Below, piece by piece: positions 38,961-61,018 of a stretch of 64,000 nt of DNA. The number at the start of each line of letters is the position of its first letter. Within the stretch, counting starts at the first letter, position 1. The notes under the pieces were generated by a model. The model was not told where the DNA came from. It did not search any database and saw only the letters and a list, made by a program, of their open reading frames with translations. The stretch spans positions 1 to 64,000 of the forward strand of contig QPMI01000532.1 of NCBI GenBank assembly GCA_004431415.1. Direction: 5' to 3'. Made by a program: the position numbers and the translations under genes. The DNA comes from Cyanophora paradoxa CCMP329 (taxonomy: Eukaryota > Plantae > Glaucophyta).

Positions 38961-41900
38961 ATGCTGCGGAGGCACGCGGTGCACGCAGTGCATGCCGCGA
39001 GACCGCCGCTGCTTCGCTGGCACGGCCGGGCGGCTGTCAGCTCCGCGGCGAAGCACGTCGGCGGGCGCGATGCGGGCCCAGCCGCGGTGCGCGCGTATGC
39101 CCGCGGGATGCATGGCGAGCGTCGGCAGCGCACGCCGACCGCGGCTGTGTGACGCTCTGCCGCGCAGGCCGTGTACGACGCCGCCGCGCTGGAGAGGCGC
39201 TTCCGGTCGTCGCGGCTAAAAGCGGTCTTCAGAGCAGCTCAGGTCGGCGTACCGCTCGGCGCATGGGTCGGTGCGTGTCACGCTCGCACGCCCCGCTCGG
39301 CGCCGCGTGCGACGGGGCGCGCGCGCGTGCGGCGCAGGTGCGTGGCTGCTGGTGCGGCTGAAGGACAGGCTGGTTGGCCTGCCGACGCCGGAGGAGCTCG
39401 AGAGGCGGCAGCACAAGTTCGCTCGGGCGCTCCGCCGCGTCATAGTGCGCCCCGCCCTCCACCCCGCCTCGCCGCCGCTGACGCGCCTCGCTCAGGTGTG
39501 GCTCGGCCCCGCGTGCGCGCTCCGGCATCGTTCCTGCTGGCCATGGCTGACCCCTGACGCCCTGACGCCCGCCCGCCCGCCCGGCCCGCCCCCGCGCAGG
39601 TTCATCAAGGTGGGGCAGGCGCTTAGCAGGTGCGAGCCGAGACTCTAAAAGCCCCATCCGACGATCCCTCCCTGCCGCGCGGCGCCTGAGCGCTGAGCGC
39701 CGAGCGCCTCTCTAAGGGCCGAGACTTATAACTAAGGGCGCCGGCGCTGTGATCCCCCCGGCGCTGCGCTGAGCGCCGAGCGCCCTTTTTAAGGGTCGGG
39801 ACTCTAAGGGCGCCAGCGCCTTGATCATCCCTCCCTGCTGCGCGCGGCGCGCTTCGCTGAGCGCTGAGAGGTGCGGTTCTGCGCGGCAGCCGTGGGGATG
39901 TACTACCCCCCGCCTACATCGAGGAGCTCTCGGCCCTGCAGGACCGCCTGCCCCCCTTCCCCGACGGCCACGCCCTCATAGAGCGGGTCAGCCCTACTAC
40001 CCCTCTACTGCGCCCTCTACCCCCCTTACTCCTCCCCCCCCTCTTCCAGGAGCTGGGGCGGCCGGTCTCGGAGCTGTTCGCGGAGCTCTCGGCGGAGCCG
40101 ATCGCGGCGGCGTCGCTGGGGCAGGTGTACCGCGGCCGCCTGAAGAGCGGCGAGCCCGTCGCCGTCAAGGTCCAGCGGTGCGCGCGAGCGAGCGGGCGGG
40201 CGGGCGGGCGGGAGGGCTGGGGCGGGGCGGGCCCGGCTCTTCGTCGCGCCTCGGCGGGGCGGGGCGCGTGCGTGCGCGTGCCTGACGGGGGGGCGGGGCA
40301 GGCCGGGGATCGAGGAGCAGATCGCGCTGGACCTCTACATCACCCGCGCCATCGCGGCCCGGGCGGCGCGCGCCCGCGCGGCCGAGGCCGCCGGGCTCGA
40401 CGGCGCCGGCATGCTCGACGAGTTCGGGGTGCGCCCCTCCCCTTCCCCTCACTCCGCTCGCTGCCTTGCGCTTTCTAAGCTTAAGATCCTGTTGAGCCTT
40501 TTGAGCTTAGGATCCCGCTATGCTCTTTGAGCTCAGGATTCTGCTAAGCTTTGTGGGCTTAGGATCCTGCTAAGCTTTTTAGGCTTAGGATCCCCCCTGC
40601 GCCCTTCAAGCTTAGGATCCACCTCGGATCCCCCCCGCCAGGCGCGCCTTTTCGAGGAGCTCTCTAAGCCTTCTAAGCTCTCTAAGCCTTCCAAGCTTTC
40701 TAAGCTTTCTAAGCGTCCTAAGCTAGCGTTCTCTAGGCTCTCTAGGCTTTCTAAGCATTCTTAGCTTTCTAAGCTTCGAATCTTGCTGAGCTCTAAAGCC
40801 CTGCGCCCCGCGCCTTTCTCGCCTAAACATCTAGCCACGGGTCTTTCCCCTAAGCTTAGCATCCTGCTGAGCTCTAAAGCCTAGTGTTCCCGCCTTGATC
40901 TTTCTAAGCTTGGGATCACGCTGAGCGCTTTCCCCCCGCCAGGCGCGCCTCTTCGAGGAGCTGGACTACGCGCGCGAGGCCGACTCCGCCGACGCCTTCT
41001 ACCGCCTCTACGCCCACTCCAACGTCCGCCCGCGTACCCCCCGCCCGCTCCTTCCCCCCTATTTCAACCTCTGAGTGGCGCTGCGCTGCGCGCAGCCGAT
41101 CGTGGTGCCTGCGATGCACCGGCGGCTCAGCACGCGGCGGGTGCTGACGATGCAGTGGGTGCGTCAGTTAGCGAGCGGGCGGGCGGCGCGAAGCCGCCGT
41201 CGATAGCAGAGCTGTCGATAGCGAAGCTACCAGTCTTCTTCCTTCGCCCGTCCTTCTTCTTCTATCGGCTATCAGCTATCAGCCCGGGCAGTCTTCCTCC
41301 TTCGACGGCCCTTCGTTCCCGCCCTGCCCCGCTAGAACCCCGCCTCTAGACGGGAAGACGGGAAGGCCGCATCCTACGCCGCCCCGCGGCGGCTCTCCCG
41401 CAGCTATCTGACTCTGCACCGCCCCGCCCCGCCCCGCGCGGCCTTCCCGTCTCGCTCTAGAGGCGAGTTCTAGGCGGGCTCGCAGCTGACTCTGCCCGCC
41501 CCACCCCCCTCCCCCCCATTTCGGTCTCAGGTGAGCGGGGTGAAGCTGACGGACGCGGGGGCGCTGCGGCGGGCCGGCCTCGACCTCCCCCGCCTCCTCG
41601 ACGTCGGCGTCCGCTGGCGCGCGCGCCCCGCAGCCCCGCCCTCCCGCCCTGCCCCGCCTATCTCTAGATGAGGGGGAGAAGCCGGGGACGAAGCGTCGAG
41701 GGCGCCCCGCCCGCCACTTTACATCACATCAAGACAACGCCTCTTAGACACCTCTTAGATAACGAGGAGGAGGAGAAGCGTTTAGAGCGCCCCGCCCGCC
41801 ACATTACATTATATGAAGACAACGCCCCACAGCCCCCTCCCGCCCCGCCCTCCCGCCTGTTAGATAGCGAGAAGAAGGAGAAGAAGCGTTAAGAGCGCCC

Positions 41901-42486
41901 CGCCCCCTCCCCCGCCCCCTCCGCCTCGGGCCCTGACCGCGCCCCGCGCCTCCTCAGCTCTCTGCAGCAGCTGCTCCAGCACGGCTTCCTCCACTGCGAC
42001 GTTCGCCCCCGGCCCCGCCTGGCCCCGCCCTCCCTTTCCTGAGCGTTGAGCAGCCGCACCCGGGGAACCTGCTCGCGACCCCCGACGGCCGCCTCGCTTA
42101 CCTGGTGCGGGCCGGCCCCTTCTAAGTCGAACCCCACCGCGCCTTTAGCTTGGCCTCTGATATCGATCCCGCTCAGGACTTCGGGATGTGCGCCTGGCCG
42201 CCCGCCCCGCCCCACCCCGCCCCGCCCCGCCCCGCGGCCGGCACCCGACGCTGTACCCCCCCCCCCGCAGGATGTCGGTGGTACCCCCCGAGCAGCGGCA
42301 CGGCCTCATCTCCGCGACCGTCCACCTCGTCAACGAGGACTACCCCGCATTCGCCAGGGTACGCCTTATAATCTTCCGCCCCGTCCCCCCCCCCCGCCCC
42401 ATCCGACGCTGTACCCCCGCAGGACTGCGTGGAGCTGGGGTTCGCCCCGGCGGGCTCCGAGGGTCCACTCGCCGAGGCCCTGGCGC

Positions 42487-42534
<48 letters not shown>

Positions 42535-43867
42535 CCTCCTCCTCCTCGTCTCTAAAAAATGAGCAGCGGGGCGCCTTTGGGCCGCGGCTGGCGCGGAGCA
42601 GCATGGAGCTCAGCTTCACGGAGATCAGCGAGCAGGTCCGCCCTGCCCGTCCCGCCCCGCCCCGGCACGCCCGCGAAAACCAGGCCTGCGCCCCGAGACG
42701 ACCGGGGGACGCCTAGCCACCGCTTCTGGAGCGGGAGCACGCCAGCTAGCGCCTAGCCTCCGCCACGCCCGGCTCCTAGCTGGGGACCTATAGCTAGCCC
42801 CCTCGCCTCCATCCTACCGCTAACGCTCGGGCAGCTGGGGCGGGTGATCTACGAGCAGCACCTGCGCGTGCCCTCCTCCTACGTCCTCATCATCCGCTCC
42901 CTCGCCACCCTCGAGGGCATCGCCCTCCGCACGTGCGCGCGCCCCTCCGACTCTTAAGCCTCTTCCCTAGGCTTTACCCTACTGTATTCCCCTGAGCGCG
43001 GGCCGGGCCGCAGGTACGCCGACTTCAAGGTCCTCTCGCGCGCGTACCCCTTCATCGTCTCCCGCCTCCTCGCCGACCCCCACCCCAAGGCGCGCTTCCA
43101 CCTACCCCCCTACCCCCTACCCCCTCTCACGTATCCCCCGCAGCTCTCGGGCCCCCTCCGGGACCTGCTATTCCACCCGGACGGCGCGCTGCGCTGGTCC
43201 CGAGTAGAGACGCTCGTCGCCGCGGCTCTCCAGCAGCCGGCGGCGCGCCCGGGGGCCCGCTCCGTCGACGACGACGCGGACTCGACGGGCGGGGCCCCCG
43301 GCGCCCGAGCCCTGGAGTTCTTCTTCTCGGAGCGCGCCGCCTTCCTCCGGCGCTACGTCGTCGAGGAGGTCGTGCAGATCGCCGACGAGCTCCTCCCGCT
43401 CCACGACCCGCCGCCCCGGGGCGCCCCCGCCGCCTCGCTGGCCGAGTGGTCCCTCCGCCTCGTCCGCCTCGCCGGCATCGTCGCCGCCTCCCCCTCGGGC
43501 CTGGTGCGCCGATCGCGACGTCCCTTAAAGCTTCAAGCATATCTACAGCTTATGTTTCTTCTTAAAGCCCCTTCCCTTCAAGCTTGTCTTCTAAGCTCAA
43601 GCCTTCTTGCCTTTCCTAGCCTATCTACAGCTTATGTTTCTTCTTAAAGCCCCTTCCCTTAAAGCTTGTCTTCTAAGCTCAAGCCTTCTTGCCTTTCCTA
43701 GCTCATCTACACCTTATCTTTCTCTCTCCCAGGTTGGGGACCGGCTTGCGGCGCTGCGGACGGTGGCGGCGCTGGCGGCGAGCGCGCGGACGTACGCCGT
43801 GGCGCTGGAGATGCTCCGCGACATCGCAGCCGGCCTCCGCGAGCGCATCCGCGCCCGCTTCCTCTAG
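38961..43867 (+). CDS. ABC1/UbiB-family atypical kinase, multi-exon
   Basis: [85 protein letters not shown] and [10 protein letters not shown]. Confidence 0.95.
41690..41905. repeat. Intronic degenerate tandem repeat (about 85-110 bp units)
   Basis: GAAGCGT..AG.GCGCCCCGCCC occurs three times; CAC.TTACAT...AAGACAACGCC occurs twice. Confidence 0.75.
42488..42531 (+). repeat. Poly-C homopolymer (about 44 nt) in an intron
   Basis: Direct observation. Similar runs occur near 3433, 37446, 61315 and 63498. Confidence 0.9.
43541..43710. repeat. Near-perfect tandem duplication of about 82 bp in the last ABC1K intron
   Basis: ATCTACAGCTTATGTTTCTTCTTAAAGCCCCTTCCCTT...CTTTCCTAGC at 43541 and 43623. 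Confidence 0.9.
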
Positions 43868-44012
43868 CTATCTATAAATAGCCCCCGGCTCGCCCCTCCA
43901 GCTAGGCTGAGGTCTTGTTCCTGAGGACAAGCAGGGCGAACAGAACGATAGATAGAGCTCATGGCAAAGGGAGGGAGGAATGAAGGGCGGGGTGGATGGA
44001 GGGGGCGTGTGG

Positions 44013-47000
44013 TCAGCCCTTCTTGGCGCCGCCGGCGGGGGGGATGAAGCGACGCATGAAAGCGGGGAGGGCGGGGGCGACGGGGGCCGGCGGCAGGGCG
44101 GGCGGGAGGGAGGAGGAGGCGGCGGCGGGGACGAGGGCGGGGGCGCGAGGTGGCGAGCCCTGGTGCAGGTGCGCCTTGCGCGGGCTCGCCTGCCGGCCCG
44201 GGCCGTGCGCGGCGGCGGCGGAGGGCGGCCGGACGGGCCGGAGCGGGGAGGGGATGGAGGAGCCGGCGGGGGCGGGGCCGAGGCTGGGGCCGGGGCCGGG
44301 GGATGCTAGGGGCGCCGGCGCGGCGGCGGCGGCGGCACGGGAGCGGCGGGCAAGGAAGACAGTCCCATCGGCGGTAAGGGCCGCCGATAGGTGGCTGTAG
44401 GCCCCCGCGGCGCCCGCCCCGGCCGAGGGTGACCCCGATTCGGCTTCGGGGGAGGCGGGCCGGGGGAGCCCAGAAGGCGAGGCCGGCCCGAAGGGGGCGA
44501 TGCGGGCCGCCGGGGAGAGGCTCTTGCGGCCCGGCTCGCTCCCCGGGGCGGAGCGCGTCTCGCGAGCGGCTGCTAGGCCCGAGCCGGCGGCCGTCGGGTG
44601 CAGCGGGGCGGAGGAGGGCGGGACGAGCGTGGCGCCCGCGGCGCGGCCCGACGGCGAGCGCGCCACGCCGGGCGGGGACGGCCTCCCGCGGAACGAGCCG
44701 CCGCGGCCCCTGCCGCGCCGGCGTGTCGGGCACGGGCAGAAAGCAGCAGACGGGTACAGGGCGAAGCGTAGGGCGCGCGCACTGGTCGGAGGCCCGTGGA
44801 GGGAAGGGGCGCCGGGGGCCATAGGGCGACGGCCGCCGGGGTCCGGCGGGAGACGCCGCCCGGGGGCGTGGAGCGCGGGGTGCCCCAGGCGGCGGCGGGG
44901 CTCCCCGGGCCGGGCAGGCCCCCCGGACCGCCCTGGACGAGCCGGGAGCGGACGCGGAAGCCGCGCCAGAGGCGCTGGATCTCTGCTCACATCAAGTCGG
45001 ATCAGATCAGGCGGAGAGCGAGCCGCGTAGGTTTCAGATGAGGGGCCGTGGCCCGGCTTATCTAGGACCAGAACGCAGGGGCGCACCGGTGGCGGCGCTG
45101 ACGTGGTCGTGTTCCGCGGCCCGCCGCCGCCGCCGCCCGCTCCCGCTCCCGCCGGGCGCCCCGCCCTTCGGCCCGACGCCGGCGAGGGCGAGGGCCCGGG
45201 CGCGCTGCGCGGCGCGGGCGGCGCGGGAGGCGGCGATGGCGGCCCGGTGCCTGCGGCGCCAGCGGTAGTGGCGGCGGATGCGCTGTAGGCAGAGGGCCGC
45301 CGCGAGGACGAGCCCGCCGTCCGCCGCACCGCCCCGGCCTCCGTCCCTGCTGCCCCGCCTCGTCAAGGAAGCAGAGAGACAGGAAGCAAGAAAGGAAGGG
45401 CCGGGAAGGACCGCGGCAGGCGGAGAGGAGTTCTCGACGGGCGCGGAGGTGCGCGAGGCGGCGGCGGGCGAGGCGGCGCCGGGCGGCCGCCTCGAGCACC
45501 GTCGCTGCGCCGGCGAGGCGCGCGAAGGCGGCGAGGAAGCGGCGGCGGAGGCGGCGGCCGCGGAAGGCGGCCGCGATTCGCGTGGCGTAGACCTGCCGCG
45601 CCTCGGCGAAGGCTCGGTACGCGCTCCGCTCCGCACGGAGGCGGACCAGCTGCGCCCGCGCCGCCCCGCGCCGCCACGCGCTCTGCCGTGCGTGAAGTGA
45701 GAGGGCGGGGCGGGGCGGGGCGAAGCGGAGCGGAGCGGAGCGTGCCTGGATCTTGGCGGCGGCCGCGCCGGCGCTCCGGCCGAAGGCGCGGGCGGCGAGG
45801 AGGGCGCGGCGGGCGCGGCGCATGCGCCAGACGGCGCCGAGGGCGGCGGCGGAGCGGAGGCGGGCCCGCCATCGCTCGGCGCGCGCCCGCCGGAGCGTCT
45901 CGCAGGCGATCCAGCGCAGGCACACGGCCCGCACCTTCTCCGCAGCCTCCCGCCGCTGCGGCCCCGCGCCAGCCCGTCGGCCCCGGCGGTCCCGCGAGGC
46001 GCAGAAGGGCGGGCGGACCTTGCGGCGGGCGGCGCGGGCGAGGGCGCGGCGGGCGGCGGCCTGGATGCGGCGGGCGGCCTCTGCGGGGGGGATGGCGGGG
46101 GCGTGGGGGGGCGACGCGAAGCCGGCGCCGGCCCCCGGGCTGCTTCCGGCCGGCGACGAGGCGAAGTTCGGAGTGCTGAAGCCCGAGGGGGTGCGCTGCC
46201 CCGCCGGCGGCGCCGGCTGCCCGGGTCCCATATGCATCCCGGGGCTCCTCGGCTGCCCGCTTCCAGGGCTCGACACGTGAAAGGCCGGGCTGTCGGTCCC
46301 CGGCCGCCGCGGGCGGCGGGCCTGGGGCCAGGAGGGGGTACCGGAGCCGTCCTCGTAGTCCGGGAGGGATACAAGGCTCCGGGCGCTGGAGCGGAGGGCG
46401 GGGGGAGCGCCGGGCGGGGGCGCCACCACGGGGCGGCGGGCCGGGCCCGTGGAGGGAGCCCGGCGCGCCCGCGCCGCTATCAGCTTCCTGAGCTTCTCCT
46501 CCAGCGGGTGTCTGCCGGCGGGCGGGCGGGCCCCTTCAGTCCCGGGCGAGGGGCGCGGAAGGGGGCCGGGGCGGGGCGGGGGGCGCCGCACGCACTCCCA
46601 CTGCGTCACTTTCGTCACCGGGTTGTAGTCTGCAGGTCCGGAGCAAAGCGAGCGTCAGGGGGGCGGCGCAGGACGGAGCGCGGGCGGGGCGTGGGGCGCG
46701 CAGTACGGGTGCGCGTCGTCGTTGTCGAACGTCTGCCACGGGGGCGGCAGCGGGAACACGGTGAAGTCTGCCCGGGCCCGGGGGCTCACGCGAGTGAGGC
46801 GCCGGGAGGGAGGGGGCGGGGACGGGGCGGCGGGGACGGGGCGGGCGCGCACCGAATGCGCCTGGAGGTGGCTTCAGTTTGCCGTCGCGGATGCGCTGGA
46901 TCAGGGACTTGTAGTGCTTGTCGATCGGGTTCTCCCACGAGGACCCGTCCGTCTGCGGCCCGCGCGTGAGCGGGCGAGCGCGGCGCGTCGCTTGGAGCGG

Positions 47001-47974: not shown

Positions 47975-50900
47975 ATGTCGAACAGCCTGCAGTGCGAGAT
48001 CGAGCGCGTGGACGCTCTCTGGGTGCACAAGCTCTCATGTTTTCCGGCAGCTTCCATAGCTAAAGAATCCCGCAGGTGAGGAGCCCAGGGGCGCCGACGC
48101 GCGGAGCGGGAGACGGGCGCATGTGCGTTCTCGTGTATCCGACGCCCTCGCCGATGCGGACGTCGAGCAGCACGCCCGCGCCCGGACGGGCTGCCTCGCG
48201 GAGCCCGTCGCCGCCCCTGGGCGAGGGCGCGCGGGAGGACGACGAGGGCGGCCGCTCAAGCCCGCCGGCGAGCTCGCCGCCGCTGCGCAGCTCGGCCTCC
48301 TCGCCCGCGGTGGGCCCGCAGCGGCTGCCGGCGCTGCAGGCGGCGGCGAAGGTGGTGCTCCTGCAGCGCAACCGGGCGCCCTCGCCGGAGATGCGGGCCG
48401 AGCACGTCCTCCGCGCCGTCGACACGGGGCCCCGCGCCCGCTCTCGCCAGGCGCAGGCCGTCCGCCGCACCCTCTCCCACGAGCTCAAGGTCACCACCGA
48501 CGTCTTCGGTGTCGCCCCTTCCGCCCCTTCCGCCGCCCCGTCCCTCGTGACGCGGGGGCGGCAGAGCGGACGGGCGGGGCGGCGGGGGCGCCCTGGGGGA
48601 CGACGGCGAGCGGGATGCACGAGGCGTGCCAGCGGTCGGAGGCGCTGCTGCGGCAGCGGTGCTCGGCGCTGCAGCTGCGCAACGAGGCGCTGGTGCGGGA
48701 GCTCCAGGGCGCCCGCGACGAGATCGCCGCCCTCCGCCGCTCCATCGGCTTGACCCCGGAGGGCCTCCTCGCCGCCGGGCCGGGCGCCGAGCTCGGTCTG
48801 CCGCCCCTACCCCCCGCCCCCCTACCCCCCTTGACAGCGGACGCAGGGGACCTGCACGCTGCGTGCCGGGCGGAGATCGAGGACCTGCGAAAGACGGTCG
48901 AGGGCCTCTCCGCGGGCGAGGCCAAGCCGACCACCGCCGTCCCGCCAGGGGCCGACGCCCCCGCACTCGGCGACCCCCGCGATAAAGGTCCGCGCGCCTC
49001 CGCTCTCCTCTGCCACGCTACGCTACGCTACGCTACGCTCCGCTACGCTACGCTTTGCCTGAGCCGCGCGGGCGGGCGGGCGGGCAGAGGTGTACCTGTG
49101 CGTAGCGGACGAGGACGCGCTGCGGTGCGCGCGCATCTTCGGGGAGCTGCGGGACCGCCGCTTCCGCCTCGCCTTCGACGACGACTCGTTCCTCTCGCCG
49201 GCCTGCGGCGCCTTCGTCTTCTTCGCCACGCCGGCCGCCGTGAAAGACACCCGCCGCGTCCAGTACCTCCACCAGGGTCCGCGTCTTGAAGCCCCTTTGG
49301 TCCGCTCCGTTTGGGCGACGCGGGGCGGGCGGGCGCGTCCGCAGCGATGGAGGCGGGCAGGCCGATCGTCCCGGCGTTCCTCGACGTGCGGCGCCGCCCC
49401 TGTCGTTTCCTCCACTCCGCTATCTTCGACCTGACCGGCGCCCGCGGGGCGCAGCCGCCGGCGGAGGTGCACCTCGGCTCCGCCCTCGACGTCCCCCTCC
49501 GGCGCTTCCCCGTGCGTTCGAACCCTTTACCGTACCCCCCGCCCTTCGTTCCCTTTCTAAAAAAGCCGCGCCCTCCCAGTGGGTGCTGCTCGGGGGCTTC
49601 GAGCGGCCCGGGGAGCTGAAGGCGCGGGTGGACCGCCTGGCCGCCTCCATCCTCCGCCTCTACGCCAAGGGCCGCGAGGAGCCGGCCCGCCCCGACTCCA
49701 TCCCCCCGCTCGACGTCCGCCCTTTCCCCTTGCTTCTTCTTCGCCTTGTTTGCCTCCTCCTTGACGCGCTCCGTTCTTCTGCAGGGTGCGCCCCCCTCGG
49801 CCGCGGCCGGCTTCGGCCTGCACGGCCTGCCGCCCTCGGGCGCCAAGACCGCGCGGCGGGCCGCCAACGCGGGCGGGGAGGAGGGGGCGGCCGGCCCGCC
49901 TCCGCGGCGCGTGTACGTGAGCTACGCCGAGCGGGACGCGGACCTGGCGAAGCGGCTGGCGTCGGACCTGCAGCGGCGCGGCTTCGAGGTCGAGTGCGGG
50001 GCGCCGGCGCCCTCGGCCCCCGCCGCCGCCGGGGGGGCCCTCCCCGAAGACGTCGCCGTCGCCATCCAGCAGACGTACGCCTTCCTTTGCTTCGCCTGGC
50101 CGCGCCTCGCCTCTGTTCTGATCGCTTTGTTCTTCCGTCTTCGCAGGGGCTGCTTCCTCCTCGTCGCCTCGGGCGGCTCGGTCGTACCCCCCTGCCGCGC
50201 CCTCGAGGAGCTGGCCTTCGCGTACGAGAACGCCAAGCCGCTGGTCGCCGCCTGGGTCCAGAAGGCGGCCGCCGTCGAGCCGCTCATCCCCCCGGCCACG
50301 CTGCACCGCCTCCGCCGCTTCGCGATGCTGGCGGTCCAGCTGCTTGGGGGGGCCGTCGGGGGCACCAAGGAGCAGTACGCCGCCGGGTTCGAGCGCATCG
50401 CCGCCAACCTCGAGCACGCTCCCGTGCGCCTGCCCCTACCCCTCCTCCGCTCCGCCCCTTGATCCGGGGCAGGGTACGGAGCGGGGGCTGCTGGTGGCGG
50501 CGTCGGGCCCCGGGAGGGAGGCCCCCGGGGCCTTCGCGAGCCTGCCCGAGGCCCTCGCCGATGCCGACCCGGGCGACGTGCGCTCTCTTCGCTTTGCTTT
50601 GCTCTGTTTGCCGCGCGCAGTTCAGGCCCGACCGCAGGTTGTCTACGTGGCGCCCGGGCGCTACGTGCTGACGACGCGCTGCGAGGTCGCCCGCGGCGTG
50701 CGCGTCACGGGCCTCCCGCCGGCCCCCGAGGAGCGCGGGGCGGTGGGGGGCGGGGGCTTCGAGGGCGCGGCCCCGCCGGAGCGGCTGCTGCGGGCGGAGC
50801 TGCGGCTCGAGGGCGGGGGGCAGCTGGTGCTCACCGACAACCGTCCGCCGCGGGAGGCGCGGCTGGCGCCCCTGCGCGGCGCCCTTCTCGACATCGACGT

Positions 50901-53900
50901 CGTCGCCGCCGACGTCCCGCCCCGGCGCCGCCCCGCCCCGCCCAACCCAACGCCCGGCCCTCCTCGGCCGCGCCGCCGTCGCCGCCGCGGCCGCCGCGGC
51001 GGCTGCGGCGGCCGCCGCGGCCCCGCCCCCGCCTCCACTGTCGGCGGTGGAGGCGCGGGCCGGGGACTGGCTGCTGGAGCGGGTGGCGGTGCGGGCCGGG
51101 GGCCGCCGCCACGCCCTCGCCGCCTCCGTCAAGGAGGGCGGCCACGCCCTCGCCCTCACCGTCCTCGGCTGCCTCTTCGCCGGAGCCGACCGGTCCGCTC
51201 CGCCCCGCCCCGCCCCGCTCCGCCCCGCCCCTCCCCGCTCATCTCTCTGTCTGTCTGCAGGGAGGCGCTGCAGCTCGGCGCGGGCCGCTTCTCGGTGCGG
51301 CGGAGCGTGATGGCCGAATGCGGGGCGGGGGCCCTCGCCGGCGGGGCCGAGCTGGAGCCCGGCAGCGAGGCCGTCGACTGCCTGGCGCTGGCCTGCGGGG
51401 AGGGCCCCTTCCGGGTCGCCTCCTCCTCCTCCTCCTCCTCCTCCGAGGTCACGCTGTCGCGGAACACGGCGCTCTCGCGGCCGCTGCCGGCCACGGGCGA
51501 GGTGGCCGTCGGCCCGCCCATGGCCGCCCTCTTCGCCGCCCTCGACGAGCTCCACCAGCGCCGCCTCGCCGCCAAGGCCGCCGTCCGCCTCTCACCTAAG
51601 CTGCTCTCTGCTAAGCTGAGCCAGCTGAGCCTTGCCTCGCCCCACCGCAGAACACGTCGTTCGTGTGGCGGGTGGAGGCGGGGGCGGCGGTGCGGGGCAT
51701 GGGCGAGGGCCTCGTGGCAGGCCTCGCGGACGCCGTCTCCGTCGCCCACGACGGGGACACCATTGCCCTCGCCCCGGGTACGCCCTCCGCCCTAAGCTAG
51801 CCCAGCTTCTGGGCTTGGCTTCTTGGCTTGGCTAAGCGGGCGGCGGCAGGGCGGCACGCGGTGACGGCGGAGGTCCGCGTCCGCTCCGCCGTGGCCATCG
51901 AGGGCACGGGCGCGCGCCTCTCTTCCCCCCCTCTGTTCTTCGCCCGTGGTTAGGCTGAAGCTTACGGTCTCGAGCAGGGGCGGGCCCGCACGAGTGCGTG
52001 GTGGCTTTCGGGGCCGGTGGCGCCCTCCTCCTCGGGGCCGCCCCCCTTCCCTCCTCCTACGCACAGCCGTCGACGCCCGCCGGCGGCCCACCGCCGCCGC
52101 TCACGCACGAGCGGTCGCGGGGCGGCCTGGGGGCGGCGGTCCTGGGAGACGCGCCGCTGCGGGGCGCGCTGCGCAACCTGACGCTCGCCGCCGAGCCGGC
52201 GCCGCCGTCGCACCGGGAGGGACACGGGCGGCACCCCGGGGACGGCGCGCCGCACGCCGTCAAGATCGAGTCGGGCCTGTGGGCCTTCCAGCGCGCCGTC
52301 GTCCTCGCCGGCGGGCGCTGGCACGGCCTGGAGGTCGAGAAGAGCGGGGCGGCGGCGGCCGTCGCGGCGCTCGACCAGTGCGTCGTGGCCGAGGCGTCGG
52401 AGCACGGCGTGCGGGTCTGGTCGGGGCGCGTCGAGGCGCGCCGCTCCATCTTCGCCAACTGCCGCAAGGGCGCCCTCTTCGCTGACCTCGGAGCCGAGCC
52501 CGACCCCTCCGAGGCGAGCGCGCGTCCTAGGCTGTCCCGTCCTCCTCCTAACTCGTGGCCGACTCCGCCCGCCGCGCAGATCCGCGAGTGCACGTCGGTC
52601 GGCTGCGGCGAGTCGCCGTACCGCACGCGGCGGGTGCCCCTGCCCCACGGCGCCAATGTGCCCGCCTCGGCCTCGGCCGCGCACCACCCCGGCGCGCTGC
52701 CCACGGTGGGCAGCAGCTCCGGCGGGGTCTACGCCTCGACGGCCCCGGGCCGGCGGCGCCTCTCGGTCACGACGTCGGACGTGGGCGAGGGGGCGGGCCC
52801 GCCCCCTGGGAGCCCCGGCGGGGCCGGGGCCGGGGCCGGGGCCCGCCGGCGCTGGCGGCGCGGGTGCGGCTGGCTCGGAACCTCCTTCTCGTGCGGGAGG
52901 CGAGCCGGGAGGAGCTAACCGAGGGCGGCGCCGCCCTCTGGCGCTCCCTGGAGGCCCTCCGCCGCGCCCGCGCCGACGCCCGCGCCGCCGGCGTGCCCTT
53001 CCGCTGGAGCGTGGACCCCGCGCAGGCCGCCGCCGCCCGCCTGGAGGAGGGCACCGTCGGCTGCTTTGCCGAGGCCGCCGCCGGCGCCCGCGACGGCGAC
53101 GTCGTGCGCCTCTCCGCCGCCATCCACCGCCTCGCCGCCGAGGCGGCGCTGGAGGGCGGGTCACCGTGGAGGGCCCCGGGCCCGCCGCCGCCTCTATTGC
53201 CCTCGTCACCCCGGCCGCCCGCCTCACCCTCCGGCCCCGCGATCGCGAGCGAGAGCGCGAGGAGCGGCCAGCGGCGGCGGGCGCGAGCGCGCAGGGGCCG
53301 CCCGGGCCTGGGCCCGCGCCCGCCGCCCAGCCGGGCGCCCTCCGCGACTTCGCGGTCCTCTGCGGCCCCGCACCGCCTGCCCCCTCCGCGTCGCCGGCGG
53401 ATCCTGGCACGCCCCGCCCCGCCCGCCCCCCCCCCCCCCCCCCCGCCTCTGAAACTTAGTTCGCAGGCTCTGCGAGCGCCTCTGGGTGGACGCGACGGAC
53501 TCGGCGCTCGCCGCCGGCGCCTGCGTCCGCCTCGCCCCGCCGCTGGCCTCCCTTCGGGCCGCCGAGGCGGCCGGCATGACGCTCGCCGAGGCCCTCGGGC
53601 CGGCGACGAGGCCGGCGGGCCGGCCCTCCGCATGCGCGACTGCGTGCTAGGGCGGCGGGAGGGCCCGGCGAGTGGGCCGCCGTCCGCCTCCTTCGCGGCC
53701 GCGCCGCCCTCGAGCGGTGCCTCCTCGCCAACTGCGGGGCGGGCGCCCTCGTGGTCGGGGCGCGCCCGCACGCGCGCCGCCGGCCCTCGCGCACCGCCCC
53801 GCGGCCGGCGAGGCCCCCGACCCGCCCTCCGACCCGTCGGGGGACGAGGCGGAGGGTCCCGCCCCGGCCCCGGCCCCGGCCCAGCCTCCGCCTTCTTCCG

Positions 53901-55729
53901 GGCCTGAGGCGGCCCCGAGCGGGAGCGGGAGGTATGGGAGGACGCGGACGAGGGCGAGGGCGCCCCCCACTGCGAGGCGCGCCGCCGCTCTCGCCCCCAC
54001 CCGCTCCGCCCCTGATCGGGCTGGCCCTCGCCTGCAGCTGCTGGGCTGCGTGGCGCTCGGGTGCGGGGCGCAGGCCGTGCGGGGCGGCGCCTACGTCCGC
54101 ATGCGCTCCTGCGCCGTGCGCCCGCGCCCGCGGCCTTCGCCCCCGCCCCTTCCTTCGCTTCCCTCTGATGAGTCGTGTACGCAGGCGTCGGCGCGGCCGG
54201 CGACGGCGGCCGAGTTCGAGCCGGCGGGGGCGCTCGGCTCGGGCCTGATCCCCGCACTGGACGCCCTCCGCGCCCGCCGCGCCGCCGCCGTCGCCAAGGC
54301 ACGCGCTCTCACCCTCGCGGCCTGCCCTGCGGCCTTTCTAAGGCCGCTTCGGCGCTCCGCAGGGCGAGCGCTTCGTTCTGCACGTGGCGGTGCTGCCGGA
54401 GGGGGCGGCGGCACCCGGGGCGACGGCGCCGGCCGAGCTGGCGGCGGGGCGCACGGGCAGCGCCGAGGACGCCGTCCTCGCCGCCGACGACGGAGACACG
54501 CTCGCCTTCGCGCCGGGTACATGCGCCCTTCCTTCTTCCTTCTTCTCTTTCCCGGCCAACCGGGTCGGCCGGGGGCGCAGGGACGCACCGGGTGCTTGGG
54601 GAGGTCCGCGTCACGACGCTGACGACCCTCGAGGGCGCCTCCGCCGCCGTCTCCGACGTCGTACTCCAGGCGCGCTTCTCCCCCCCTCCCGCTGAAGTTC
54701 TGTGTACCCCCTCTGAGCGCCTTCTCTGAGCAGCTCGCGCCGGAGGCGAGCGTGCTGCTCTCGCTGGGGATGGCCCCCGGGCGGATGCCGGACGTGCCGC
54801 GGGCGCCGCACGCGCGCGGCGTGCAGACGGCGGCGGTCGGCGGCGAGCTGCGGCGCCTGGCCTTCCGCTGCAAGCCGGGGGGCACCCCCGCCCTCCGCGT
54901 CCGCTCTGGCGGCTGGCGCCTCCACGAGTGCATCGTCGACGCCGGCGGTCGCCCCTTCTGCCTCGTGCGCTTGTACCCCCCGCCCCCCGCCCCCGCGCGC
55001 TCACGCCGGGAGCTCCTAGGAGGTTGGCGGTTCGCGGACGCCCTCAGCGGCGGCGGCGGCGAGCGCGTACGTCGCCTCTCAGCTGCGCGCCGCGAAGGGC
55101 GGCGGCGACTCCACCACCCACGGCCTCGTCGGTGCGGCTCTAAACATAGAGCCTGTACCCTGTACCCCCCTAACGACGGGCGGGCAGCGCCGGCGTGGGC
55201 GGCGGCGTGGGTGGAGGCCTGCACGCTGGGGCGCGGGGGCGCCGGGGCGGTGCGCGCCTGGCCCGGCGCCATGCTCTTCATGGCCACCTCCCTCGCCTCC
55301 GCCGTGCGCCCTTCCTCCATCCTTTCTTTCTTTCTTCTCTCTTCTGAAACTTCGCAGTGCGGGGGGCGCCCCGTCCGGATCGGGGCGGCCCCCGCGGGGG
55401 GTACAGTCGCGGAGGGCCTGGAGGTGCCGGCCTCGGCGCAGGGCCGCTCGGGGCGGCGCATCTCGCTCGCGGGGGGCCCTGGCTCGGCGTACTCCTCCGC
55501 CGCGTCCACGCAGGCGACGGGGTGCGAGGTCGACGTCTCCGAGAGCGCGGCGGCGGGCTGCGGGGGGCGCGAGGGCCCCGCCCTCCGCGGCGACTCGACG
55601 GGGGCCTTCGTGGGGGGGACCGCGGCGCCCCGCGACCGCATCTCGGTCACCCGCTCTCTGATCCTCCCCCGGGCCGCCACGGAGCTCGAGGCGGCGCGCG
55701 CAGGCTGGGGGCCCGCCGCCGTCCGCTAG
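47975..55729 (+). CDS. Large multidomain protein: coiled coil, two TIR_2-like domains and four right-handed beta-helix (pectin-lyase-like) modules
   Basis: TIR-like segments VYLCVADED...AFVFFATPAAV...AMEAGRPIVPAF and VYVSYAERDADLAKRLASDLQRRGF...CFLLVAS...ALEELAFAYENAKPLV. Four beta-helix cap motifs: SLPEALADADPGDVVYVAPGRY, GLADAVSVAHDGDTIALAPGRH, CFAEAAAGARDGDVVRL and SAEDAVLAADDGDTLAFAPGTH. Continuity as one gene is inferred from compatible splice phases. Confidence 0.7.
49015..49053. repeat. Pentanucleotide microsatellite (GCTAC)n in an intron
   Basis: About seven or eight imperfect copies. Confidence 0.85.
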
Positions 55730-55868: not shown

Positions 55869-57302
55869 TCAGGCGAGGTCGAGGTGCTCGACGACGAAGG
55901 CGGTGAGGGTGCGCGTGAGGGCGTGCACGGAGGGCGGGTCGATGGCCGACATGTCGTCCCCCTCCGTGTGCCACACCGACGGGAAGGGCACCGCAATGAG
56001 GTGGAGGATCGGCACGCCCCGCCGCAGGAACGGGATGTCTGGGGGGTAGGGGTACGGGATCAGCGGGGCGGGCGGCGGGGAAGGGGGCGGGGCGTGCGAA
56101 CGGTCGTCCTGCACGTGGCCGAACCGCTCGTGCTTCGGGGCGAACATCGGCGGCCGCTCCCTGCACCCGCAGAGTGAGGAGAGGGATCAGGACGAGTCTA
56201 GCTAGGGCGGGGCAGGCGGGGCCCACGTGTGCTTGCGGGCGCCGAGGCGGGACTCGAGGGCGCGCAGCCGCTCGTGCGGCGCCGCCGTGTTCTCGAAGTG
56301 GGAGACCAGGCGGACGTCCCGAGAGCCCAGTAGGTCCAGCAAGGCGAAGAGGGCGATGGAAGGGAGGCGGCCCTCGCGCTCCATGCGGGCCGCGAGGTGC
56401 CGCGCCCCATAGAGCGAGTCACGGTCCGTCCACTCGAGGAACGCTTCCTCCCCGTCGAAGAAGAAGAGTTCGAGCCCCAGCGCGTCCTTTTCTTTGTTGC
56501 TATTGCTCGCCCGGCGCCGCAGCAGCGGGCCCGCCGAGCGCGCGATGTCCAGCATCATAGCGCACGGGCACGCCGAGTCCGTCGCCGCAAGGAACCGGTT
56601 CGGCTCCTGCCGAAGGCGTTAAGCTCGGCAAAAGAAAGAGCGGCGCGGAGGATGGCCGCACGCACGGGGAAGTACTTGGACTCCCAGTGGCAGGCCAGGA
56701 CGAGGTTGCGGGCGGCCTTGGAGCCCGGGAGGCGCCCGATGATGTTCGTGAAGTTCTTCCGCCCCAGCGGCGTCGTGTCCTCGAACCCGTCCAGTTCCGC
56801 CTGCGCCCCGCCGCGTGTTTCGTCGGGGAGGGAGCGACCGGCGGGGCGGGGCGGGGCGCGCCTCCCAGCCGGCCTCCCGCAGGCGCTGGACGATGTACTC
56901 GCGCACGCGGGCGTGGCCCGGCGTCCCCACCACGCGCGGACCGAAGTCCAGCATCTCCTTCGTCATCCGCAGCACCGCCTCGCCGTCCGCCAGCTTCGCC
57001 ACGCTCTGCGCGGCGGGTCGCGCCGGCACAGGGCGCGCCGCCGCCGAGCGGGGCGCACGTCGAGCCACTCGTCGCTTTCGCGGTTCTGCGGAAGCAGAGA
57101 CGGGCTCTGCGCGTCCGAAGGGCCCGCCGAGGCCGAGGGCCGCTTGGAGATGTAGAGGAGCGCGGCGAGGGCGACCAGGACGAGCGCGGCCAGCCTCCGC
57201 GGCCTGCGGAGGCGTGAGCGCGCGCACCGAAGTGCTTAGCTAACGTCTTTGCCGGGGGCTGGTTCGTGCGCACGCGCGGCGCGGCCGGCCGTCGCTGGCC
57301 AT
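55869..57302 (-). CDS. QPCT: Glutaminyl-peptide cyclotransferase (M28 Zn fold) with an N-terminal signal anchor
   Basis: PRVVGTPGH, FTNIIG, LACHWESK, AATDSACPCAMMLD, FFDGEEAF.EW...DSLYGARHLA, LLDLLG, DDHIPFLRRGVPILHLI and PFPSVWHT. N-terminus RRLAALVLVALAALLYI. Confidence 0.93.
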
Positions 57303-59129: not shown

Positions 59130-61018
59130 CTATCGGAAGATGCGCTTGCCGGCCTTGTAGGCCTTGCGGGCGGCGAGGACGGGCCCGACGGCGAGGAGGG
59201 TCGGCACTCCGAGGGCGATGCCGAGGGCCCCCGCGACGGGCGCGCCGATGCCCCACGCCGCGGTGAGGCCGACGCGGCGGGCCCAGAGGCCGGCCTTGGA
59301 GTGGGCGCCGTGCTGGGACCCGGGGCACCCGAAGGGGTTGAGCTTCGAGAAGTGCCGGGAGCTGTAGTCGCCCCCGCAGAGGTAGCAGAAGCTGTGCCCG
59401 CAGCGGCACCTGCGCCCCGAGCTCAGCTCGAGCTTAGCTTAGCCGGGGCGGAGCGGACGTCACGTGGTTGCAGCCGCCGTTCTTCTCGACGAAGCTGCGG
59501 CACTTTCGGCACCGCGTCGCGTGCTCCCGCTGCCAGACCGCCACCCCCGCCTCGTTCGGGCGCTCCCGCTTCTCGTACGTCTGCCGCCGCCGCGCGGATT
59601 AGAAAGCGAAGGCTGGAGCTGGAGAGGCGGGGCGGGCGCGCCTTGCAGTCGGTGCCGATGTGGGCGCCGGCGTGGACGAAGCAGAAGGGCTGGCGGCAGG
59701 CGGGGCACGCGACGGCGGGGCGGCGGCGGGCCGAGGCCTTGGGGAAGCTGGAGACCACGCCGCAGTGCGGGCACTCGCGGGACTGCTTGTCGGCGTGCAG
59801 GACGCGCAGGTTCAGGAAGCGGTTCAGCTCCGCCGGCGCCCCCTCCAGCAGCTCGATCACCGCCGCCTCCTCCGCCCGCCGGCTGCACCCGGGCGCTGCG
59901 TTCGCGTCAGAAGCGCGCGGCGGCTTGAGATGCGGAGGATTGGGCGCACATGGGCACTTGAAGAAGATCAAATTCTCGTGGAGCTTGTGCGTCGCGTAGG
60001 CGGCGGCGCAGTCGCGGCAGGTCGGGTGCGCCCCCGCGCATTCGTCGCCGAAGCCCCGGAAGAGCGCCGCCTCCTTGGGGAGGCGCTCGAGGCAGACCTG
60101 GCACCGGAAGCTCGAGCCCTGCCCCTGCTGCTCCGCCGCCTCCTCCGCTCCCGCCTCGCCCGCGCCCGACCGCGCCGAGAGCCGCTGCGCGCCGCCGCGC
60201 GCCGGCGCCGCGCCGGCCTCGCTGAGGAGCGCCCGCAGGCGCGCGGCGAGGGCGCGCTCCCGCTGCGTCGGGCGCAGCGCCTCCGGTCCGGCCGCGAGGT
60301 CCCCTGGCGCCTGCGCCCCGCGTCCTTCAGCGACGGAGGCGCGGGCGCAGACGGATCCCGCAGGGGCGCGGCGCACGGGACTCGGGTCGGTATCGGAGAA
60401 CGGGTTCTTGCCGGCGATGAGGGCGGGATCCGGGGGCGGCGGCGCGGCACTCGCGGAGCCCGGCAGCTCGAAGTCAGCGAATGCCGCTAGAAAGTGCGGA
60501 GAGTACGGCTCGTCCTCCACGTCCTCCCCCCCTTCTGTGGAGCTGCTCGCCACCGTTCCTGGCGGCGCGCCCGCGGGCTCCGGAGCAGGGCGGCCGCGAC
60601 TCGAGCTTGGTGCCGCGGGCTGGAGAGACCGCTCTGTTGCGGCGGAGGGGAAACGGGTGACGGCCAAGGCGAGCGCGACGCCGAGATCCATCTCGAGATC
60701 GCCGTACGCGGCCACTTCCGCGGCCGTCGCCTCGCGATCAGTCTCCGTGCGCGATGTCGACGCGCCCGCACCCGTCCTGTGCTTCGAGCGGACCGGAGAC
60801 GCCCGAGACGTGCTTTGAGAGTCCCAATCGACCCCGAGTGCCGAAAGACGACGGCAGGCGCCAACATGGTCAAGGGCGGCCTTCAGGAGGTACGGCGGCG
60901 CGTCCGTCATGGCCGTGATGAGCAACGGCGGTGCTGCAGCTGTCGCCGACGGTGAAGACGATGATGATGAAGAGGCCTCGGCATCGTCCGGAACGCGCCT
61001 CGCGAGGGAATTCCGCAT
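59130..61018 (-). CDS. RBR (RING-IBR-RING) E3 ubiquitin ligase with a C-terminal transmembrane segment
   Basis: RING1 CQVC...HPTCRDC...KCP, IBR ECPHC...CPACRQPFCFVHAGAH...C, RING2 RCRKCRSFVEKNGGCNHVTCRCGHSFCYLCG, HFSKLNPFGC and a hydrophobic tail. The 5' end is uncertain. Confidence 0.9.

Follow-up and report, generated by a model that had tools for sequence, protein, structure and literature searches.

A coiled-coil, TIR and repeat-module gene of the glaucophyte Cyanophora paradoxa, a candidate TIR sensor

The window, the whole stretch of 64,000 nucleotides that was analysed, contains on its plus strand a gene with many short exons, separated by GT–AG introns of 49–139 nt. Inspection of the open reading frames (ORFs) showed that no single ORF covers positions 47975–55729. 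The locus lies on contig tig00021035 of Cyanophora paradoxa, and the EukProt gene model g17250.t1 (1436 aa, referred to below as P0001) maps to it with 100% identity over 20 exons (47975–53647, plus strand). It is a genuine lineage-specific nuclear gene of this glaucophyte; the encoded protein is soluble, without a signal peptide or membrane helix. The features of the gene are as follows.

47975..48025, plus strand: exon 1 with the ATG (P0001 aa 1–17), from exact P0001 mapping
48079..48507, plus strand: Ser/Pro/Ala-rich low-complexity N-terminal exon (aa 18–160), from P0001 mapping
48564..48986, plus strand: predicted coiled-coil region (aa 161–284), two exons around intron 48798–48848, from weak family matches and a homodimer model
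49087..49714, plus strand: TIR1, a degenerate TIR-like domain by BLASTP against TIR2 (aa 285–425), four exons
49905..50423, plus strand: TIR2, TIR_2 domain by match to PF13676 (aa 466–614), two exons around the in-frame 72-nt intron 50076–50147
50205..50210, plus strand: codons of Glu542–Glu543 in C538-R-A-L-E-E-L, the WxxxE-type position of helix C, from the sequence
50473..51519, plus strand: module 1 (aa 615–874), a cap split by intron 50581–50640 into ALADADPGD and VVYVAPGRY, then a β-rich core, from comparison with module 2
51520..52905, plus strand: module 2 (about aa 875–1227), linker helix, cap AVSVAHDGDTIALAPG and core, from comparison with module 1 and from TIGR03805
52906..54225, plus strand: module 3, linker helix and cap intact in frame 0 (52930–53154), from HMM and tblastn
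53525..53650, plus strand: candidate intron of 126 nt (GTCCGC...CTAG), which would bypass the stop of the public model and keep the ORF open to module 4, from phase tracking
54226..55729, plus strand: module 4, linker helix, cap AVLAADDGDTLAFAPG, core, last strand RISVTRSLILP and stop, from HMM and tblastn (E 1.4e-5 to 6e-4)

In the exon 48079–48507, the coding signal (GC3 minus GC2) starts only at about 48270, so the first part of this exon may be mis-modelled. A 49-nt consensus intron (50424–50472) connects TIR2 to module 1, about 10 residues past the TIR domain. The TIR part and the modules thus constitute one gene, at least through module 2, and over this part the TIR and repeat exons are not the separate genes that the earlier note had allowed for. 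Neither a transcript nor a second-source protein turned up for the gene; the 90% cluster of P0001 has one member and a look-up of encoding contigs showed that the P0001 product is absent from the assembly records. A bacterial origin is ruled out by the intron-rich structure. The protein contains no transmembrane-like stretch, which rules out a membrane receptor. Pfam searches with P0001 and with the exon pieces gave no match to NB-ARC, NACHT, LRR or other STAND/NLR parts (WD40, TPR), in agreement with the earlier reading that NB-ARC/NACHT, LRR and transmembrane segments are missing; as there is no NTPase, NLR identity is ruled out as well. The gene is flanked by one ABC1 kinase-like and one Peptidase_M28 gene; the latter is convergent and ends at about 55872, adjoining the 3′ end of module 4.

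The region at aa 161–284 shows weak matches to coiled-coil families (bZIP_1, HAP1_N and HrpB7). Its homodimer model is parallel and in register, with an ipSAE of 0.56 versus 0.19 for the best control; the modelled interface comprises aa 174–221 and 244–258. At least 78% of the contacts agree between runs, with a pLDDT of at least 71; in the benchmark of the homodimer score, 21 of 30 solved homo-pairs, and 0 of 23 single chains, came up to this mark. The model bears out the coiled coil proposed in the earlier note, and the region is predicted to pair as a parallel dimer.

According to its profile match, TIR2 is a genuine TIR_2-family domain that keeps a Glu residue, its WxxxE motif taking the form CxxxEE. 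In the HMMER comparison suggested earlier, spliced P0001 matched Pfam TIR_2 (PF13676) with an E-value of 6.9e-9 and 36.7 bits, above the gathering cut-off of 28 bits; aa 468–567 correspond to profile positions 1–98 of 122. The segment aa 455–615 alone scored 35.4 bits and the unspliced genomic TIR2 exon just 22.7–23.7 bits, below the cut-off. The WxxxE motif and the role of its Glu have been defined (PMC11374754). In TIR2 the motif reads C538-x-x-x-E542-E543, the Trp being replaced by Cys. Glu542 is encoded at 50205–50207 and Glu543 of R-A-L-E-E-L at 50208–50210, where the earlier note had placed the catalytic-type Glu; the catalytic equivalent may be either E542 or E543. Sequence and structure searches gave no residue-by-residue alignment of TIR2 with a solved TIR. 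A long insert rich in Ala and Pro takes up the BB-loop region, which separates strand B from helix B, and, given this insert and the Cys in place of the motif Trp, TIR2 activity may be lost.

Sequence searches of the PDB with unspliced TIR2, spliced TIR2 and a TIR1+TIR2 profile matched no TIR chain. PADLOC models did not match the gene, and TIR2 matched no model of a catalogued defence TIR (Thoeris ThsB and others); in NCBIfam, ThcB4 scored only E 0.22 and 10.3 bits, versus a cut-off of 220. There was no TIR2 match among plasmid genes (tblastn), PHROGs and NCBIfam searched with genomic pieces yielded nothing useful, and a word search with the TIR2 region of P0001 returned P0001 alone. Word searches with genomic pieces, under a length filter that leaves out a protein of 1436 aa, gave no match. 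The precomputed annotation of P0001 gives PF22842 beside PF13676; PF22842 was not reproduced by the Pfam scans, and no identification of it was found in the literature. The AlphaFold model of TIR2, built from a two-row alignment, has a pLDDT of 46.6. A Foldseek search with this low-confidence model gave nothing significant (none with E <0.09), the non-significant matches being β–α–β stretches of about 30 residues, some of them to TIR structures.

TIR1 has no Pfam match and is weakly similar to TIR2 (BLASTP E 2e-4, 26% identity over 135 aa). Residues Q343–Y344 of TIR1 (RRVQYLHQ, 49252–49275) align opposite E542–E543 of TIR2, so Gln-Tyr occupies the Glu positions, as the earlier reading of RVQYLHQA in the first TIR had it. 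The claim of two tandem TIR_2-like domains holds for TIR2 at the level of the Pfam cut-off; for TIR1 it comes down to the resemblance to TIR2. By this alignment, TIR1 is degenerate, a TIR-like domain that lacks the catalytic Glu, and the two domains appear to be an internal duplication within one chain.

The remainder of the protein is a module array with about 270–350 residues per module. Modules 1 and 2 are 29% identical (BLASTP E 5e-18), and an HMM of modules 1 and 2 matches modules 3 and 4 colinearly (E 4e-8, 3.5e-5, 1.4e-5 and 6e-4). An initial all-against-all BLAST of the translated frames returned mainly matches of low complexity. Judging from the colinear matches, the array arose by internal duplication. 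The earlier description of four modules, each with helix, cap and repeats, stands as to the four related units and fails in detail: module 1 directly follows TIR2 with no separate linker helix, and module 3 is frame-fragmented. In a six-frame translation of the window, the cap motif occurs at modules 2, 3 and 4 only, the module 1 copy being split by its intron; the pattern, derived post hoc, had 0 occurrences in 100 shuffles. The modules have no detectable relative elsewhere. When module 2 was compared by HMMER with 1.84 billion cluster representatives, the self match alone came back, and a PDB sequence search with a piece of module 1 returned nothing; it was fair to call the architecture unrecognised as far as the modules are concerned.

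The public model reads into module 3 and meets a stop at 53648–53650. Downstream of the cap, the pieces of module 3 lie in frames 2, 1, 0, 2 and 1 (tblastn and frame views), the HMM matches being in frame 0 (E 4e-8) and in frame 2 (53676–53771, E 3.5e-5). With no intron room between these pieces, their frames imply roughly four −1 shifts over 600 nt. The bridging ORF through 53651–54115 is no longer than chance in 80% GC DNA. Module 4 lacks its own start codon and consists of seven exons (54185–54289, 54363–54516, 54581–~54660, 54734–54964, 55020–55131, 55188–55303 and 55358–55729), with consensus GT–AG introns of 54–73 nt, all in phase. Phase tracking of nine exons via the candidate intron encountered no internal stop and ended on the TAG at 55727–55729; a chain of GT–AG exons may thus keep one ORF open to the stop at 55729. 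As the public model ends in the frame-broken module 3, a four-module protein is plausible only. Most likely, the gene spans 47975 to 55729, with module 3 damaged or mis-assembled, and the public 1436-aa model is probably truncated.

Bacterial, plant and animal immunity all use TIR domains as an executioner or signal module. Like the NADase-type TIR_2 domains of bacterial AbTir and TcpC and of animal SARM1, TIR2 has a putative strand C–loop–helix C layout with a Glu at what would be the WxxxE position and, as in oligomerisation-activated TIR enzymes, it stands beside a self-associating element, here the predicted coiled coil. Unlike AbTir, TcpC and SARM1, it has the CxxxEE version of the motif, the insert in the BB-loop and no match to any solved TIR. 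SARM1 carries ARM and tandem SAM N-terminal to its TIR, whereas a coiled coil and a TIR-like domain are found here; P0001 and its domain pieces gave no Pfam match to SAM or ARM. Paired active and inactive TIRs are known from plant RPS4/RRS1 and from tandem-TIR proteins. The present protein resembles the RPS4/RRS1 pairs in that a Glu-less TIR-like domain lies beside a Glu-bearing one, but both are in one chain, by apparent internal duplication, with no NB-ARC or LRR.

As for the modules, they share with β-helix proteins (PF13229, PF05048, DUF1565, TIGR03805) the cap motif A..A..(D/P)GD.(I/V).(L/V).PG.(Y/H), a putative β-rich core with Gly, Cys or Asn turns and language-model neighbours in that clan; like the tandem CASH domains of FBXO11, they are short tandem units. 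They differ from β-helix proteins in reaching no model threshold, in having their own linker helix (module 1 excepted) and in having no relative among the cluster representatives, and they are fused to TIR domains, not to an F-box (FBXO11) or a secretion signal. No paper found in the literature ties TIR domains to β-helices in algae or glaucophytes.

The best explanation of the whole, to which we give about an even chance, is a lineage-specific soluble protein with the order coiled coil–TIR1–TIR2–modules, running to 55729 and acting as a TIR sensor. The coiled coil would tether two chains. Each module would be a short right-handed β-helix with an N-terminal cap and a linker helix before it, and the array would be the putative ligand-binding or autoinhibitory part. 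Ligand-driven clustering would bring TIR2 domains together, and the clustered domains, by analogy with other Glu-bearing TIRs, would cleave NAD+ or make a nucleotide signal, with TIR1 as a non-catalytic partner. That the protein binds glycans, acts as a sensor in the cytosol or works as a NADase is pure conjecture. The fullest version of this idea is doubtful, and the least probable reading given here: a glaucophyte-specific, NLR-independent, one-piece immune receptor with a coiled-coil dimer, an inactive/active TIR pair and four lineage-specific β-helix modules, which would sense a microbial or viral ligand and release TIR2 NADase signalling.

The β-helix fold of the modules is weakly hinted at by the cap motif, by a TIGR03805 match and by language-model neighbours. 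The TIGR03805 (beta_helix_1) match on module 2 (aa 920–969) has E 0.015 and 14.4 bits versus a cut-off of 141.5, and it spans profile positions 1–49, the N-terminal cap alone, on the cap motif. The nearest language-model neighbours of modules 1 and 2 are Beta_helix/NosD/DUF1565 clusters with a score of 0.95, which shuffled proteins reach about 1 time in 100; the shared-feature counts are 130–153, compared with 170 typical of true family members. The checks proposed in the earlier note did not bring out the fold: Pfam Beta_helix (PF13229) and NosD (PF05048) gave no match at E up to 10 on the exons of modules 1–4, and AlphaFold yielded a pLDDT of 36.5 for module 2 (five-row alignment), a model as unusable as that of TIR2. 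Self-similarity of rungs within modules 1 and 2 is not significant (p ~0.13–0.19). These shortfalls, together with a protein composition of 18% Ala, 11% Gly, 11% Arg and 9% Pro, would suit modules that are not β-helices at all, being Ala/Gly/Arg/Pro-rich, partly disordered repeats of GC-rich coding DNA with a cap motif arising by chance. We consider this rather improbable, since modules 1 and 2, at their low identity, independently reach the same clan, the TIGR03805 match coincides exactly with the profile cap, and the positions conserved between modules are hydrophobic, Gly or Cys, as in solenoid rungs.

The extent of the gene can also be read differently: the public model would be right and the protein would end in a decayed module 3, comprising a coiled coil, a TIR-like domain, a TIR and two modules, with module 4 left over, dead and untranslated, from an ancestral gene that was longer. 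The stop of P0001 and the succession of frames in module 3 (0, 2, 1, 0, 2, 1, with no intron space) agree with such a history, as does the fact that none of the shifts is at a long homopolymer; this number of shifts would also be a large number of errors for a Quiver-polished assembly. A dead remnant, however, should have decayed like module 3, whereas module 4 has seven in-phase exons, consensus splice sites and a stop exactly past the last conserved strand. In addition, regions of the C. paradoxa assembly without Illumina coverage were left uncorrected and, according to its authors, the Augustus models need curation (PMC6704402); module 3 sits at the GC maximum of the window (81.5%). A remnant is accordingly a minority reading, about as improbable as modules of another fold. 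Somewhat less probable than either is a TIR that serves as a non-enzymatic scaffold or is inactive, with repeats that form an array of structural use or one that binds proteins, and that have nothing to do with immunity or glycans. The Cys in place of the motif Trp, the long insert between strand B and helix B and the lack of similarity to solved or defence-system TIRs would be expected of an inactive domain, and no defence-related gene stands beside this one, its neighbours being the ABC1 kinase-like and Peptidase_M28 genes. On the other hand, a Glu kept in TIR2 and lost in its duplicate TIR1 is the pattern expected under selection in one copy, and the predicted coiled-coil dimer fits oligomerisation-activated TIRs.

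A TIR sensor running to 55729 is thus the preferred reading. The gene couples a Pfam-grade TIR, without a STAND NTPase, to duplicated modules for which a search of 1.84 billion protein clusters revealed no relative. In addition, the public gene model for this locus is likely truncated, and the locus falls in an 80% GC region with a break either in the reference assembly or in the gene. To our knowledge, the wiring of TIRs to sensors outside the NLR scheme is poorly known in early-branching algae. If expressed and active, the protein would be a new type of sensor for TIR biology and a natural inactive/active TIR pair within one chain. Should the one-piece receptor prove true, the third lineage with primary plastids would have arrived independently at a link between recognition by repeats and TIR output.

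GC content in the window ranges over 65–81%, and ORF analysis found no single ORF across 47975–55729. Coding signal (GC3 minus GC2) alternates between the three plus-strand frames every 100–400 nt, and the frame changes coincide with short GT–AG introns, often T-rich, indicating that the gene is intron-rich and eukaryotic. The C-terminal part of the proposed protein contains four related modules: M1 (50473–51519), M2 (51520–52905), M3 (52906–54225) and M4 (54226–55729). A full HMMER search with an M2 exon against 1.84 billion cluster representatives returned a sole match, P0001, a 1436 aa protein (E 1e-111) from EukProt EP00741 Cyanophora paradoxa (gene model tig00021035_g17250.t1), whose 20 exons map to 47975–53647 with 100% identity. 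As this search yielded no relative of M2 beyond its own protein, the modules are orphan at the sequence level, including within the C. paradoxa proteome contained in the library. The 90% cluster of P0001 has no other member, and no expression evidence was found in the cluster or the assembly records. Two genes of housekeeping type delimit the locus:

39361–43425, plus strand: ABC1 atypical kinase-like gene (PF03109, E 4e-16), upstream of the TIR gene
55872–57002, minus strand: convergent Peptidase_M28 gene of glutaminyl-cyclase type, with its C-terminal exon ending near 55872

About 140 nt separate the stop of the TIR gene from the coding end of the convergent Peptidase_M28 gene. Elsewhere in the window, Cys-rich exons at 59464–60139 (minus strand) give weak IBR-domain matches (E 0.02–0.03), possibly representing an RBR-type ubiquitin ligase gene. 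The region 44001–46000 has a GC content of 80.8% and long frames open on both strands, with minus-strand ORFs of 438–518 aa.

The second TIR domain (TIR2) scores 22.7–23.7 bits with TIR_2 on unspliced exons, and 36.7 bits (E 6.9e-9) on the spliced public model, where aa 468–567 cover profile positions 1–98 of 122. The HMM search suggested in the earlier note thus places spliced TIR2 above the cut-off of 28 bits, and by this profile match the gene is assigned to Pfam TIR_2. The intron inside TIR2 (50076–50147) is 72 nt long and in frame, so a few of its codons had been taken for protein: the string QQTYAFLCF includes intron codons and reads QQT-GCFLLVAS when spliced. Strand C of TIR2 is followed by C538-R-A-L-E542-E543-L. 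The Glu of the helix-C WxxxE motif is needed by most bacterial TIR NADases (PMC11374754). If Cys538 is counted as the Trp, the catalytic-type position falls on E542. By comparison with SARM1, the downstream register would place it at E543, the residue of codon 50208–50210 that had been singled out earlier. Under either register a Glu is available, but the motif Trp is not conserved. TIR2 had no sequence match among solved TIRs, defence-system models or plasmid genes, and its AlphaFold model was of too low quality for use. The first TIR-like domain, TIR1 (aa 285–425), has no Pfam match; it aligns with TIR2 (E 2e-4), with Q343-Y344 facing the two Glu, and is most aptly seen as an internal duplicate that has degenerated.

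Residues 172–262 match coiled-coil families weakly. ESMFold2 modelling of two copies gave an ipSAE of 0.56, compared with 0.19 for the best control; the ipSAE mark was reached by 21 of 30 solved homo-pairs and none of 23 solved single chains (17 of 29 and 0 of 30, respectively, for eukaryotes). The runs share at least 78% of contacts, with pLDDT of at least 71. Contacts are i-to-i and spaced by seven residues (189, 196, 203, 210 and 217), as in a parallel, in-register arrangement, so the modelling indicates a dimer of this type.

TIR2 ends at 50423 and M1 starts about 10 residues on, across a 49-nt consensus intron (GTGCGC...GCAG), which makes the TIR domains and the modules, at least as far as M2, parts of a single gene. 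The M1–M2 alignment covers 250 residues (E 5e-18), and an HMM built from both and searched on the downstream DNA matches M3 and M4 in colinear order, bearing out the earlier description of related modules after the TIRs:

52930–53154, frame 0: M3 piece, HMM positions 7–85, E 4e-8
53676–53771, frame 2: M3 piece, HMM positions 247–280, E 3.5e-5
54405–54533, frame 2: M4 piece, HMM positions 37–79, E 1.4e-5
54878–54964, frame 1: M4 piece, HMM positions 192–220, E 6e-4

All modules have a cap, A...A.(D/P)GD(V/T)(V/I/L).(V/L/F)(A/S)(P/A)(G/A). With all six frames of the 64 kb translated, this pattern, defined post hoc, occurs only in M2, M3 and M4, as an intron interrupts the M1 cap after GD; the pattern was absent from 100 shuffles. 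Each of M2, M3 and M4 follows a linker helix with the pattern aL..LdaLr.rR.aa, and a terminal strand of the type (E/R)(V/I)(T/S)(L/V).R is seen in M1, M2 and M4.

The modules probably fold as beta-helices, as the earlier note had proposed; the support is consistent but weak. The cap corresponds to the N-terminal cap that typifies right-handed beta-helices of the NosD/DUF1565 kind; aa 920–969 align with the first 49 positions of TIGR03805 beta_helix_1 (E 0.015, far under the cut-off), and Beta_helix/NosD/DUF1565 are the nearest language-model clusters for M1 and M2 (score 0.95, 130–153 shared features). On the other side, no Pfam model, Beta_helix included, matches the modules, rung periodicity within them is not significant, and AlphaFold of M2 with the only available alignment gave a pLDDT of 36.5.

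After the M3 cap, the public model continues in frame 0 through low-complexity sequence, splices at 53356–53467 and stops at 53648–53650. The homologous pieces of M3 lie in frames 0, 2, 1, 0, 2 and 1, several without room for an intron between them; every shift is −1, and about four are needed within about 600 nt (53100–53800). The breaks could be residual PacBio single-base deletions: M3 lies where GC content in the window peaks (81.5%), and the assembly (PacBio RSII/Canu/Quiver) stayed uncorrected where Illumina coverage was absent (PMC6704402). Four errors over 600 nt, none of them at a long homopolymer, would however be many. The other possibility is that one repeat has truly decayed while the rest of the array is intact.

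M4 is clean, unlike M3. Its seven exons are separated by consensus GT–AG introns of 54–73 nt, all in phase, and end at TAG 55727–55729, directly past the last conserved strand; the only ATG upstream is a single Met at 54098. The public model probably ends too early; according to the authors of the assembly, its Augustus models require curation (PMC6704402). The public model reaches its TAG without using a consensus donor, GTCCGC at 53525; that TAG could itself close a 126-nt intron, as part of a CTAG acceptor. Cut at this donor, the last exon of P0001 begins a nine-exon chain that stays open for 563 codons to TAG 55727–55729; the exons of the 3′ part were searched singly, and continuity between them was checked by codon phase only. 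In DNA of 80% GC, a bridge of 155 codons would stay open by chance with a probability of about 0.25, so the link from P0001 to M4 is possible only, and the single gene proposed earlier holds at least through M2. One ORF of about 1.94k residues, with part of M3 read off its ancestral frame, is a possible reading.

The introns hold simple repeats: (ACGCT)x8 at 49015–49054, (GCC)x23 at 50967–51033 and (CCGCC)x9 at 51195–51240. A 33-nt near-pure C tract (53412–53444) is intronic and lies shortly before the acceptor at 53466. The acceptors at 53447–53466 (M3) and 55343–55357 (M4) both carry an unusual CTGAAACTT..TCGCAG; their downstream exons are not visibly homologous, and the common string may be a trace of duplication history.

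The analysis established the domain order and the duplication history, and showed that of the two TIRs one has kept its Glu. Domain and sequence scans of the protein detected no NTPase, LRR, transmembrane segment or signal peptide, in agreement with the earlier note. The protein would be cytosolic and dimeric; the module array would bind a ligand or keep TIR2 inactive, and clustering would switch TIR2 on, so that it would cleave NAD+ or produce a nucleotide signal; TIR1 would serve as its non-catalytic partner. The gene is neither an NLR nor SARM1-like, and its TIR is not a catalogued Thoeris TIR; the tail is reminiscent of short, CASH-like beta-helix modules in tandem, yet falls below every family threshold. 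The predicted architecture is genuine and unusual, and the gene is rated as a putative TIR effector joined to a repeat sensor.
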